Of a stretch of 64,000 bases of DNA, positions 7,860 to 13,340 are shown piece after piece (within the stretch, counting starts at the first letter, position 1; each line of letters starts with the position of its first letter). The stretch comes from Anthoceros angustus (Eukaryota > Plantae > Anthocerotophyta). The notes under the pieces were generated by a model. That model was not told where the DNA came from and searched no databases. It saw nothing but the letters and a program-made list of their open reading frames with translations. Location of the stretch: contig VJWM01000108.1 of the NCBI GenBank assembly GCA_010909165.1, positions 186,001-250,000 of the forward strand. Reading direction: 5' to 3'. The translations under genes were made by a program, and so were the position numbers.

Positions 7860-9010
7860 CTGGGCATCCCTGTTTATGTTCCACATCAACACATGTCCTG
7901 CATCATCTGTTTTGTTTAGCTTCACTGCATTTTAAGCATGGTGCCCCACCATCTACATTGCTCCACTTGCGGCAAGCACCCCACAGAGAGTGCCGAAGTG
8001 CAGCACCGGGCACTTTAGGGCATTATCATTACTAGAGCTAGCGCCTCATCCTGTTGTCCTGACCAACCTGGGAGGTCCACCATTCATGTGTAGTGGTCCT
8101 ACGTGGGACTGATGCCATAATGTCTGCTCATACCCTCGAAGTACTTTCTTCCCTTGTTCACTATACCCACATGACTGCACATAGTCTGTATGCTAAGGAA
8201 TGTGATGCCGTCTGGCTGCATACCATCCTCTCTCATTTCCCGGTCCAAGTCAAAGACTGCTTCACGGGCTCCTTGACAATGCAGGCTGCAATCAGTGTAT
8301 TCCAGGCAAGAACATCTCTATTGGGCAACACATCAAACACGTGTTGTGCATCAACAGTACTCCTTTACTTCCCAGACATGTTCATCACTGGAGCTGCTGG
8401 GAATAAACACGTCAGCTTGAGGCCCTTGTTCTACAATCTGTGCATGTAGCTGCCTTCCTAGAGACAAAGCTTCGTGCACATTTGCACATACTAGTAGCAC
8501 GCGCAGAAAAATGTCACAGAATCAGGTGAAGTAGTGCCAAGGGTTCTTCTCGCATCCATAGTACTGTACACTGCTAAGAATACCCTGCAATCATGGCAGC
8601 CGATGTCACCGCATCTTTTCGACCAAGTCCATTTAATACTTTCCGGAGCATCTTCCATGCTGCCACAGTTGGCATACATTTCACCAAACCGCCGGCGACA
8701 AACACATCAGCTTGGTGTCCCATTTCTCTGATTTGCACATGCAGATGCTTCCCCTTCTCCAACGCTAAGAAGCCCACACTACAATCGCACATACCTGCAG
8801 GAGCGACACAAATTTATGTCATAGAATCGGGTCTAGCATTGCCTTCTTCTTCCATAGCATGCTGAAGATGAAGGGCTGCCTGCCCCATGCCCTTCTGAGC
8901 GTACCCTGCTATCGTTGCAGTCCACGTGACCACTTCTTTGTGACCAAGCCCATCAACACTTGCTGAGCGTGTTCCAAGCTGCCACACTTTGCATTCATGT
9001 TCACCAAGCA
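7860..9010 (-). pseudogene. PLS-E class PPR pseudogene
   Basis: Fragments ALEKGKHLHVQIREMG, MYANCGSMEDA, VFDVLPNRDVLAWNTLIAA, MREDGMQPDGITF, CSHVG...GRKYFEGM, DHY..MVDL, and the E motif ACRKWSNV..VKLNKTDDAGHVLMWNI. Multiple stops as well as frameshifts. Confidence 0.8.
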
Positions 9011-9535
9011 GTTACCCCGTTTTCACCTCAAAGCATGGATGGACGCGCGCACCCAGAGATACATCCTTCTTCACCACACATTGCTTCAGGAGGACGTTCA
9101 AGTGAGATTGGCGTGAGACCTCATCTTCCACCTAGGGCTTCGTCCCTGAGGGTTTGTTCATTTTCCGTGAGTCCAAACCGAACCATCTGAGGAGGGAGCA
9201 ATTTGCCTTGCGAAGCTCGCTATCTGCTTGCTGACCTGCAGCGCGCGAGCGGTCGGAGTCTCATCAGAGTCTCCCAGCGCCTTCCCCGTCTTGGACAGTG
9301 GCCCGTCCCGCGAAGAAAAATTACTTCCCCTTCGTGTCCGGGATGAGCAGTTACAGTTACGTTTCGTTCTCAGTTCACGGGACTTTGATACCAGCTGTTC
9401 ACCACGCCATGAAGCATCGCTGTGAGAGGAGCAAGTAGGTCTAACATCTCCACCAGCGGCACTTACCCCAGATCTGGCCATGATTGACAGATTGAGCTCT
9501 GAGGTGTGCTGGCCTAGAGGATCGAGTATAGCACT

Positions 9536-11815
9536 ATGCCAAGGAGACATCGAACTCCCGGGCCGGGAGCGTACAATGCAGATGACAAGATCACCTGCAC
9601 ATCTCCCCCAGCCTATTCTCTCGCCCAGAGATTGGCCAGCAAATCCGACAGCTTTCAGCCAGGACCAGGGGCATACAGTCCTGGCAAGGTGATAGAGGCC
9701 CTGCTTTCACTATCTCAACCAGGCATATATCAGGCACATCAGAAAGCGGGCCAGGGCCTGGAGCATATGATGCGACTGTCGTATACACTCGAGAACAGCC
9801 GCCTGCCTACTCCATAGCCAGTAAGTATCACGGTAAAGGATTCGATAATATCCCGGGTCCTGGGGCTTACAAAGTTCCTGACCATCGGAATGGCCAGCAT
9901 ACTCAATAAGTGCAAGACATCACCAAGCAGCGTCAAGCATCACTCCAGGGCCAGGAGCCTATGAAGCTGTAGAAGCTACTGGATGCCCGGCCTACTCCAT
10001 CGCAGGCAGAACCAAGCAACACCTCCCTGAAACTGCTCCAGGGCCTGGTGCATACACTCCTCGCAACAAATCCTTTGCACCAGCGTACAGTCTTAGCCAA
10101 AGGTTCAGGACCCAAAATCGAGAAGATATCCCTGGGCCGGGAGCATACGAAATTCGCAACCCCACGGGAGTTGGTATTAGTCTTGCTGCCAAAGGACGAT
10201 GTGCAAACAGTGATCAGTTCCCTGGTCCCGGTGCCTATGAATTGGATCGTTCAAGTAAGGGCCCGGCTTTCACAATTGCTGGTAAGGCGGGCAAGGGACT
10301 GGAAAGTGACGGTCCGGGACCTGGTGCTTACAATCTGCCTAATTGTAACTATTCTCCACACCACACAATTGCGGGGAAAGCACGGCCAGGAGGTGCAGAA
10401 CAAACACCCGGGCCTGGCACATATGCCAGCAATGGCAGTCTAGGCGGACCAGCCTTCAGCATGGCCGGGAGGAGGAAAGCTCCAGATTGTGAGAAAACAC
10501 CAGGGCCTGGAGCTTACAGTCAAAATTTCAGATGCATTAGCACCAGACCTCCCAAATACTCACTAGCAGTGCGGTGTTCTTCCGATCATGCCAATGAAAA
10601 TCCAGGGCCGGGAGCATATGACCCGATGTTCTCTTCTTCAAGCCCTGCGTACAGCATCAGCGGAGCAGGGTTAATGCACAAGCCAGACATCACACCAGGC
10701 CCAGGGCCTATTCAGCACAGTTGGATAACAAGAAACCAGCTTACACTATGGGACAGAGAGCTCCTGAGAGGCTCTCGGATACCCTTCCAGGTCCAGGCGC
10801 CTATAACTTGAATTCAAGGAGAGCGGGCCCAGCTTTTACCATAGCTATGAGACAGGGCAGGAGCCTAGGAGACAATTTCCCAGGCCCAGGGACTTACGAT
10901 GCGGAAGTCGCAAACAGAACGCCAGCTTATTCCATGGCTGGACGAGAAAAACATGCCTTCGCTAGCGTCAATCCTGGACCTGGAGCATACCGGTTGGTTG
11001 ACAGAATTGGAGGCCCAGCCTACACTTTAGGCCAAAGGTTGAGAAACCCGAATGAGCACAAGACTCCTGGCCCAGGAGCCTACAATGCGGAAATTGATCC
11101 AGTTTTGAGGAGGCCACCTGAGTTCTCAATGGGCGTGAAGAGCAGATTAGACCATGCTGGTGATAATCCAGGGCCTGGCGCATATGATCCCCGTGCTCTT
11201 TCCTCAGCCCCAGCCTACAGCATTACTGGATCTGGTCCTCCTCAGAAGACAAATGACACCCCTGGCCCTGGAGCCTACACTGCCAAATGGTGGGACAAGA
11301 AACCTGCCTACACTATGGGCAGCAAGCCAGGGCCAGGAAATTCTGATCTTGTCCTGGGCCAGGCACGTATGAACTGAACGTCAAAACCGACAGCCCTGCA
11401 TTCACTATTGCAGGAGAGCTACGCGGGTGCGAAAACGACACTCCTGGCCCGGTGCCTACAGTGCAGTGAACCCCTTCCCACCCCAGGTTGCAGCATTGCA
11501 AGAAGGTATGAGCTCTCGCCCGTGGAGAAGACACCAGGGCCATCAGAATACACTCCTAGTGTGCAGTTAACGAGGAACCACCCTCCTGCCTTCAGCATCG
11601 CTCGAAGATATATAGCAAACAAGCCGGAGAAGACGCCGGGCCCCGGAGCTTATTACCACAAAACTCAGTTCTCCACTGACAGAGGATTCAGCTTGGGCCT
11701 CAAACTGCATGATTCTCACAGGGAAGACTTTCCGGGGCCGGGTTCCTACACGTTTTATGAAACAAATCCAGGCCCGGCTTATACCATAGCCAGCAAAGCT
11801 CCGGATGATTGGTAG
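9536..11815 (+). CDS. SHIPPO-repeat (ODF3/CIMAP1/STPG-like) sperm-tail protein with 24 PGP(G/S)xY repeats, apparently intronless
   Basis: Joining ORFs 9536, 10242, 10721, 11408 and the intervening frames gives 24 (T/N/F)PGPG(A/T)Y...P(A)(Y/F)(S/T)(I/M/L) units about 31-32 aa apart. About six single-base slips must be corrected. The true start codon is uncertain. Confidence 0.85.
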
Positions 11816-11906
11816 GCGTCATTAGACTTCCAGGCTTATTTGCAACAAGTTTGTAGACAGATTTCTAGATAACCCAAAGGCCAACGAGCTCAAATTGTAC
11901 TGAACC

Positions 11907-13340
11907 CTATGGCATCTTTTCAGCCTCATCTAATGGCCTGCACGCCAAGAAATCAAACATGCAACTGTAATGGTCAACAGTACGATTGATGCCATGCTGT
12001 TCAGCCATGGAATCAAAATGCTTACGACCCTCATGGACCAGTTCCTCGTGACTGCATGCTACTGGAAAGCAACTAAAAATAGCACCATCAAGCAGAATAC
12101 CGGCAACCGACATCTCCTCGAACCAAGCTAGTGCTCTGTGACCATCATCACAAGTACCACACTCAGAAATCAGGCCGGTCCGCGTCACCACATCCTTTGT
12201 GTTCATGTTGTCAAATGCCTGGCGTGCGTCTTCCACTTCACTACATTTTGCATACATGTCCATCAGGCAGTTGCCCACCACTATGTTATCCAGCAGTCCT
12301 CTTTCAACACTCCGGAAGTGCAAATGCCTTCCCTTCTGCAAGGCAGCAGAGCTTGCACAGGCCTTCAGAAGGCAAGCAAGAGGAACATGGTTAGCCAAAA
12401 TCAGGCACTCCTACTCCATTTGTCCATTCAGAACAAGCACCTCTTGGCCAAGCGCTTGCTCGGCATGCCTGGCTTTGAGAGTGGTCCATGTTACCACATC
12501 CTTGGTGTTCATGCTGTCAAAAACCTGGCGTGCATCTTCCAGTTCACCACATTTTTCATACATGTCCACCAGGCACTTGCAATGGCCCAACAGTGCGTTA
12601 TCAAGCAGTCCTCTTTCAACAATCTGTGCGTGCAGCTGCCTGCCCTTCTGTGAGGCAGCGGAGCTTGCACAGGCTTCAGAAGGCAAGCAAACATAACATG
12701 GTTAGCCAAACTGAGGCCTTCTTGCTCCATCCGTCCATGCACAACAAGCGCCTCTTGGCTGGGTCCTTGCTCTGCAAACCCAGCAATCAGGCCGTTCCAT
12801 GCCACCACATTCTTCGTGATTATGGTTTCAGAAACCTGGCGTGCATGTTTCAGGTCACCACATTTTGCTTACCCAGTTATCAGGGCATTCCATGTCAGCA
12901 CATCTTTTGCGGCCATGCAGTCAAAAACCTGGTGTGCATCTTTCAATTTGAAACATTTTGCATACAAGTCTACTTGGCAGGTGCCCAACAATCAGTGAGT
13001 TCGGCTGCCTGCCCTTCTGCAAAACACCAGTGCTTGCACAGCCTTGAGAAGGCAAGCCAAAAGTAAAATGATTAGCCAAATTCAGCCCCCTGCTGCTCCA
13101 TTTGTCCATACAGAACAAGAGCCTCGAGTCCGAGCCCTTGCTCCGCATACCCGGCTATCAGTTCCATGTCACCACATTCCTTCTGTTCATGCTGTCAAAA
13201 GTCTGGCGTGCATGTTTCAATTTGCCACATTTTGCATACATGTCCACCAGGCACCTAGGTGCCAACAACCAAGTTCAGAGGAATGTATTTTTCTGCCAGA
13301 TCCCAAGGCGGCGTCAAATGCACAAGCTTGAAGGGCAGCT
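11907..13340 (-). pseudogene. PLS-class PPR gene or pseudogene (heavily frameshifted)
   Basis: ACLLKACASSAALQKGRHLH..VERGLLDNIVVGNCLMDMYAKC..VEDARQAFDNMNTKDVVT, ACSHEELVHEGRKHFDSM and DHYSCMFD. The P-L-S-like blocks repeat roughly every 300 bp. Confidence 0.85.

Follow-up and report, generated by a model that had tools for sequence, protein, structure and literature searches.

In Tetrahymena, the filamentous proteins STPG1A and STPG2 have been traced within the inter-protofilament wedge (Kubo et al. 2023, PMC10105768). The P-G-P-G-x-Y sequence of these proteins is a microtubule-binding motif that repeats every 8 nm; in STPG1A, linkers of about 40 residues serve as 8-nm spacers, successive motifs sit on successive tubulins and the chain spans the 48-nm repeat, and two 12-motif ODF3L proteins are proposed to bind 12 tubulins, or 96 nm (PMC10105768). 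ODF3A is among the proteins identified in a mouse sperm doublet-microtubule structure cited in PMC10663601. Two SHIPPO-repeat proteins of Giardia are found at axonemes and also at the ventral disc and the median body (bioRxiv 10.1101/361105).

We identified a plant relative of these proteins in a window of 64,000 nucleotides (the whole stretch of DNA analyzed) from the hornwort Anthoceros angustus. The locus is a functional, intron-free SHIPPO gene, intact despite a broken assembly, and its coding region divides as follows:

9536 to 11815, plus strand: SHIPPO-repeat gene, whole coding region (three-frame translation, motif map, PF07004 matches and frame-restoring insertions).
9557 to 10220, plus strand: units 1-7, in which the six-unit register is weak.
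10221 to 10786, plus strand: units 8-13, first copy of a duplicated six-unit block (gap-free alignment to 10787-11352).
10787 to 11352, plus strand: units 14-19, the later copy of that block, 566 nt past the earlier one.
11353 to 11812, plus strand: units 20-24; unit 20 retains PAFTI, and units 21-22 are similar to each other (SIARRY).

The single exon runs from an ATG at 9536-9538 to a stop codon at 11813-11815, and three-frame translation of 9400-11950 places an in-frame stop 6 codons upstream of the ATG. The corrected sequence encodes a protein of ~762 aa (80 kDa, pI 9.3) containing 13% proline and 12% glycine and also rich in alanine; a 7-residue basic N-terminus is the only part outside the repeats. 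No second SHIPPO-like ORF was found within the 64-kb window. An 83-nt stretch at the junction of units 13 and 14 (10728-10810) recurs with unrelated flanks in a contig of two related organisms (data sets X13 and X5), where this second copy has ~92% identity and a 2-3x higher contig depth; it may belong to a paralogous SHIPPO gene or be a chance repeat match.

All six uninterrupted pieces of the translation match PF07004 (SHIPPO-rpt, sperm-tail PG-rich repeat), with E-values down to 3e-31 and top scores of 105.6 and 106.8 bits, where the gathering score is 20. The protein also matches solved CIMAP1A/ODF3 chains (8otz_A1, E = 4.8e-13; 8iyj_Y0; 8snb; bovine, mouse and sea-urchin) and the chain 9y6s_4F, annotated as 'Sperm-tail PG-rich repeat'. 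With PF07004 on every piece and matches to solved ODF3 chains, the SHIPPO/ODF3-family assignment made in the preliminary description of this DNA is confirmed, and the hornwort protein is a relative of the ODF3/CIMAP1 and STPG proteins. It shares the PF07004 repeat and the unit PGPGxY ... P-x-[YF]-[ST]-[ILMF] with animal ODF3/CIMAP1A-D (SHIPPO1), but the animal proteins are ~250-280 aa long with an estimated ~6 units 36-40 aa apart, as against 24 units at 30-34 aa in the hornwort. The PGPGxY motif is likewise common to the Tetrahymena STPG and ODF3L proteins. STPG1A, however, has 5 motifs ~40 aa apart and a luminal domain, whereas the hornwort protein has shorter spacers and no extra domain. 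The 12-unit count of ODF3L is that of the fern and lycophyte orthologues; the hornwort protein carries twice as many motifs, and its 24 units place it outside the ODF3L type of 12 PGPGxY units in ~400-440 aa.

The 24 units start at positions 9557, 9659, 9751, 9853, 9945, 10038, 10131, 10221, 10314, 10407, 10500 and 10602 (units 1-12) and 10695, 10787, 10880, 10973, 11066, 11168, 11261, 11353, 11443, 11534, 11636 and 11732 (units 13-24). The motifs are spaced 30-34 aa apart, 23 of them reading PGPG[AST]Y and one PGPSEY, and the motif map places P-x-[YF]-[ST]-[ILMF] 8-11 residues past PGPGxY. Unit 23 lacks this second proline motif, as does unit 11 in those fern and lycophyte orthologues that have 12 units.

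To compare the units all against all, we scored every pair with BLOSUM after removing the invariant PGPGxY and determined significance by permuting unit order. Pairs six units apart have a mean score of 22.4 compared with 12.4 overall (z = 4.1, p = 2e-4, 24 units), while the remaining lags between 1 and 9 do not rise above background, and 13 of the 24 units find their best partner within their own mod-6 class. The six-unit register claimed in the preliminary description is therefore real, and all the shared residues on which it was based are where it had placed them. PAFTI is exclusive to units 2, 8, 14 and 20 (chance of falling in one mod-6 class, 5.6e-4); AY(T/D)P...PAYS is present in units 6, 12 and 18, an RPP spacer in units 11 and 17, DH..N-PGPGAYDP at the 11/12 and 17/18 junctions and KKPAYTMG in units 13 and 19; and the DNA offset, put at ~565 nt, measures 566 nt. 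GPA(Y/F) does occur in units 4, 10 and 16, but it is found in 2, 8, 14 and 24 as well and is not specific to that class.

The signal is concentrated in one part of the protein. Same-class pairs inside units 8-20 average 41.8, whereas the 28 remaining same-class pairs average 12.1 and different-class pairs 11.5. Units 8-13 paired with units 14-19 score 43, 20, 38, 52, 59 and 48; among units 1-7 just three pairs surpass the background mean of 12.4, 2/8 most of all (38) and 6/12 (23) and 4/10 (18) to a lesser degree, and the pairs 1/7, 7/13, 3/9, 15/21 and 17/23 score at or under background. The description of the protein as a "4 x 6" super-repeat thus holds for two clear blocks in units 8-20, together with PAFTI in units 2 and 20, but is overstated for the whole, since the fit is poor in the first and last blocks. 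The duplicated core is extended by PAFTI in units 2 and 20, together with the weaker 6/12 and 4/10 similarity.

The two blocks align over 188 codons without gaps at 48% amino-acid identity, with an identity at third codon positions of only 36%. These saturated third positions, set against the protein identity, indicate an ancient tandem duplication whose unit-specific residues have been maintained since. DNA-level identities between units show no lag-6 signal and Tandem Repeats Finder detects no array, so the duplication must be old. The register in the hornwort gene is essentially the product of this one old duplication of a 566-nt, six-unit block, plus the PAFTI units 2, 8, 14 and 20.

Searching exhaustively and without a profile, we obtained for a 270-aa piece of the protein 1892 relatives, none above 43% identity, with Stentor, Hexamita, Diplonema, Monosiga, Tetraselmis and Trichomonas among those named. 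Our plant sample consists of lycophytes, ferns and Ginkgo. The homologues of Diphasiastrum complanatum (410 aa) and Ceratopteris richardii (436 aa) have 12 units each, that of Adiantum 11 (403 aa; an N-truncated model starting inside unit 1), that of Selaginella moellendorffii 10 (353 aa) and that of Ginkgo at least 15 (589 aa). The expectation that orthologue counts would be multiples of six is borne out by the 12 units of Diphasiastrum and Ceratopteris but fails for the 10 of Selaginella. The fern and lycophyte ODF3-like proteins have retained an arrangement of 12 units that differ by position, unit 11 for instance being proline-less and carrying ISMGIRF, and the Selaginella protein has lost two units.

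In the fern and lycophyte orthologues, as in the hornwort protein, a short basic N-terminus leads directly into the first PGPGAY, and on the diagonal the hornwort protein has 7 of 12 units alike with the 12-unit lycophyte and fern proteins. BLAST HSPs between the hornwort protein and those of Diphasiastrum, the ferns and Selaginella score nearly equally at unit offsets 0, 2, 10 and 12 (196-207 bits). Profile scoring of the 24 units on the 12-unit orthologues gives similar values at offsets 12, 2, 0 and 8, dominated by an odd/even alternation. As even offsets are favored in all hornwort comparisons, odd and even units represent two distinct types. Taken from these alignments, the hornwort protein looks like a doubled 12-unit ancestor, reached via either 2 x 12 or 12 + 6 + 6 units.

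Periodicity of this kind extends across the family. Self-identity of long SHIPPO relatives peaks at residue offsets of ~95-102 aa and 190-210 aa. In Stentor, Hexamita, Trichomonas and uncultured eukaryotes, long SHIPPO proteins are near-perfect tandem six-unit arrays (30-48 units): Stentor OMJ68979.1 has 36 units (lag-6 z = 12), a metagenomic SHIPPO protein 30 (lag-6 z = 12), Trichomonas TVAG_436770 30 in the old gene model and 48 in the new (blocks of 197 aa) and the Hexamita SHIPPO 1-like protein ~41 (lag-6 z = 14). Other long SHIPPO proteins are built of two-unit blocks (P0008 family, P0006) or three-unit blocks (P0017, P0037, P0052).

After removal of sequences at least 60% identical, 83 proteins with at least 14 units remained, of which 47 show a significant lag. 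Lag 6 is best in 22 of these 47, lag 2 in 8, lag 3 in 7, lag 1 in 6, lag 4 in 2, lag 5 in 1 and lag 8 in 1. The period seen most often in long SHIPPO proteins from ciliates, diplomonads and parabasalids is the six-unit super-repeat. Among proteins of 12-13 units, the mode of the family, lag 6 is best in 53 of 104 (mean z 1.53 +/- 0.16) and lag 3 comes next, and the modal 12-unit class can likewise be read as 2 x 6. Both sets of counts come from related proteins rather than independent events and from matches picked with repeat-rich queries. Unit totals in the family range from ~10 to at least 48. Judged from these periodicities, the six-unit block appears to be a building module of the whole family.

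The long protist proteins (Stentor OMJ68979.1, Trichomonas XP_001581839.2 and Hexamita) resemble the hornwort protein in their tandem six-unit super-repeats of 189-209 aa. They differ in unit totals (36, 48 and ~41 as against 24) and in block-offset identity (up to ~57-62% as against 25% in the hornwort). In a test of cyclic order, several protist SHIPPO proteins map onto each other in block register (z 3.3-4.2), whereas hornwort unit classes compared with Stentor, Hexamita, Trichomonas and the metagenomic protein give z 0.8-2.2, without a consistent mapping, leaving common descent of the blocks unproven.

The reading we favor, with a probability of roughly 0.65, is that an intact SHIPPO gene encodes an extended, 24-unit microtubule-associated protein of the sperm flagellum whose register arose by an old block duplication. 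The basic, Pro/Gly-rich chain of 24 SHIPPO units is probably extended. By analogy with STPG1A, each PGPGxY would most likely dock on successive tubulin dimers in the groove between protofilaments of sperm flagellar microtubules, with the ~25-residue linkers acting as spacers, and the resulting long filament would stabilize or decorate the doublets. At one unit per 8 nm it would cover ~192 nm. Tandem duplication of the 566-nt six-unit block would have expanded a 12-unit ancestor of the type kept in a lycophyte and in ferns. For the hornwort protein, we infer binding to microtubules, the 8-nm step, expression in sperm and any function. The assignment of one repeat to one tubulin dimer, proposed in the preliminary description, has a published precedent in Tetrahymena STPG1A (PMC10105768) and hence is not a new idea. 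Hornwort units are 30-34 aa long compared with the ~40-aa spacing of STPG1A, and an 8-nm step needs a near-straight chain at ~2.5 A per residue; alternatively, the step may be 4 nm, for 96 nm in total.

A bolder reading, which we regard as possible but rather doubtful, is that SHIPPO proteins throughout the eukaryotes consist of six-unit modules joined end to end, with a sub-period of three units. If one unit corresponds to one dimer, the module would measure 48 nm and its sub-period 24 nm; differences among the six unit types would be preserved because each meets a different environment in the 48-nm repeat of the doublet, and the hornwort protein would be a four-module, 192-nm member and the 12-unit proteins 96-nm members. 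The six-unit pattern is equally compatible with a 24/48-nm structural constraint and with inheritance from an ODF3-sized ancestor that had six units.

Less probable, and in our judgment unlikely, is that the protein acts as a ruler or register reader, with six units equal to one 48-nm repeat and each unit type recognizing a different site inside it, so as to set or read the longitudinal register of the doublet. Consistent with this are the predominance of lag 6, both among the 47 periodic non-redundant proteins with at least 14 units (where periods 4, 5 and 8 total 4) and in the 12-13-unit class, the unit totals of Stentor (36), Trichomonas (48), the metagenomic protein (30) and the hornwort (24), the unit-specific residues kept in both hornwort blocks despite saturated synonymous sites, and the 8-nm-per-motif precedent (PMC10105768). 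Against it, total length is free to vary by multiples of the module, from 12 to 48 units, and Selaginella has 10, so that no single length is measured; homologues of 10, 12, at least 15, 24, 30, 36 and 48 units share no fixed length equal to one axonemal repeat. Hornwort units outside 8-20 show no class coherence, the hornwort classes have no consistent cyclic order relative to the protist proteins, and six-unit periodicity could be mere inheritance from a six-unit ancestor.

The established 96-nm axonemal ruler is CCDC39/CCDC40, whose two chains form a coiled-coil heterodimer with a fixed length of 96 nm, specifying where dyneins, spokes and the N-DRC dock. The hornwort protein resembles it, by analogy only, as an elongated protein along the doublet with a length related to the axonemal repeat, but is a Pro/Gly-rich repeat chain from a family in which unit number varies widely. 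Because of this variation the ruler role is unsupported, and the register-setting function suggested earlier gives way to a signal that reflects one old duplication.

Somewhat more doubtful still is decoration of non-axonemal spermatid microtubules (the spline or multilayered structure), instead of or besides the axoneme. The motif binds the generic tubulin lattice (PMC10105768), and the two Giardia proteins at the ventral disc and median body (bioRxiv 10.1101/361105) give this idea a parallel; apart from them, however, the solved or proteomic examples we retrieved are ciliary or flagellar, and the proposed spline or multilayered-structure role of the hornwort protein finds no support.

As assembled, the SHIPPO ORF is not open: it occupies three frames, with the frame dropping by one six times or more. 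To examine these breaks, we aligned Logan contigs from four public runs to 9400-11900; X1 and X2 come from the same sample as the assembly, and X13 and X5 represent two related organisms at ~93-95% identity. The bases missing from the assembly are:

After 9685 (A), 9893 (C), 10703 (G), 11355 (G), 11412 (G), 11431 (A), 11450 (G) and 11476 (C), plus strand: one-base assembly deletions, each with an extra base in the contigs.
Near 11412 to 11418, plus strand: at least one further missing base, read as X in the corrected translation.

All eight listed deletions lie in homopolymer runs, and each extra base, present in same-sample contigs (X1 and/or X2) and in relatives X13 and X5, lengthens an existing homopolymer. 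With these insertions and the one X near 11412-11418, the frame is open for 762 residues with no internal stop. X1 has some of the assembly's deletions and may be the error-prone data set behind it. Gene length is unchanged in relatives X13 and X5, and the 30 listed substitutions relative to them divide into 15 synonymous and 15 non-synonymous (a rough dN/dS of ~0.3 from an incomplete list), those at motif prolines being silent. We judged two short contig joints, from 10643 to 10744 and from 10643 to 10897, to be repeat-induced artefacts of the assembly graph and rejected splicing as their origin.

The SHIPPO gene is intact because contigs from the same sample and from ~95%-identical relatives restore its frame. 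A decaying pseudogene, with real frameshifts and the repeat pattern as a fossil, is highly improbable: the frame does change at least six times as assembled and the adjacent PPR-like ORFs are fragmented too, but all eight listed breaks are one-base homopolymer deletions that have no counterpart in same-sample contigs and three other data sets, correctly framed pieces contain zero in-frame stops, and the relatives keep the length and change motif prolines only silently.

The PPR-like ORFs, at 8491-8865 and 11907-13148 on the minus strand, lie on either side of the SHIPPO gene and are split across several frames, probably by the same assembly cause. The assembly undercalls homopolymers, lacking nine or more single bases over 2.3 kb when compared with same-sample contigs, and probably does so genome-wide. 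Broken genes in this assembly need a read check before any is called a pseudogene.

For the single gene the gain is modest: a plant member, doubled in length, of a conserved family of flagellar microtubule-binding proteins, at a locus where the assembly frameshifts are artefacts. The outcome for the family is more useful, a six-unit rhythm that recurs in the common 12-unit class and in long SHIPPO proteins from ciliates, metamonads and plants. The 8 nm per unit was already known, and the family-wide six-unit rhythm was added by this analysis. As 8 nm per motif has been published for STPG1A, a 48-nm module is plausible, and the six-unit rhythm combined with that step predicts one. Such a module, if true, would explain how unstructured repeat proteins keep register with the axonemal lattice.
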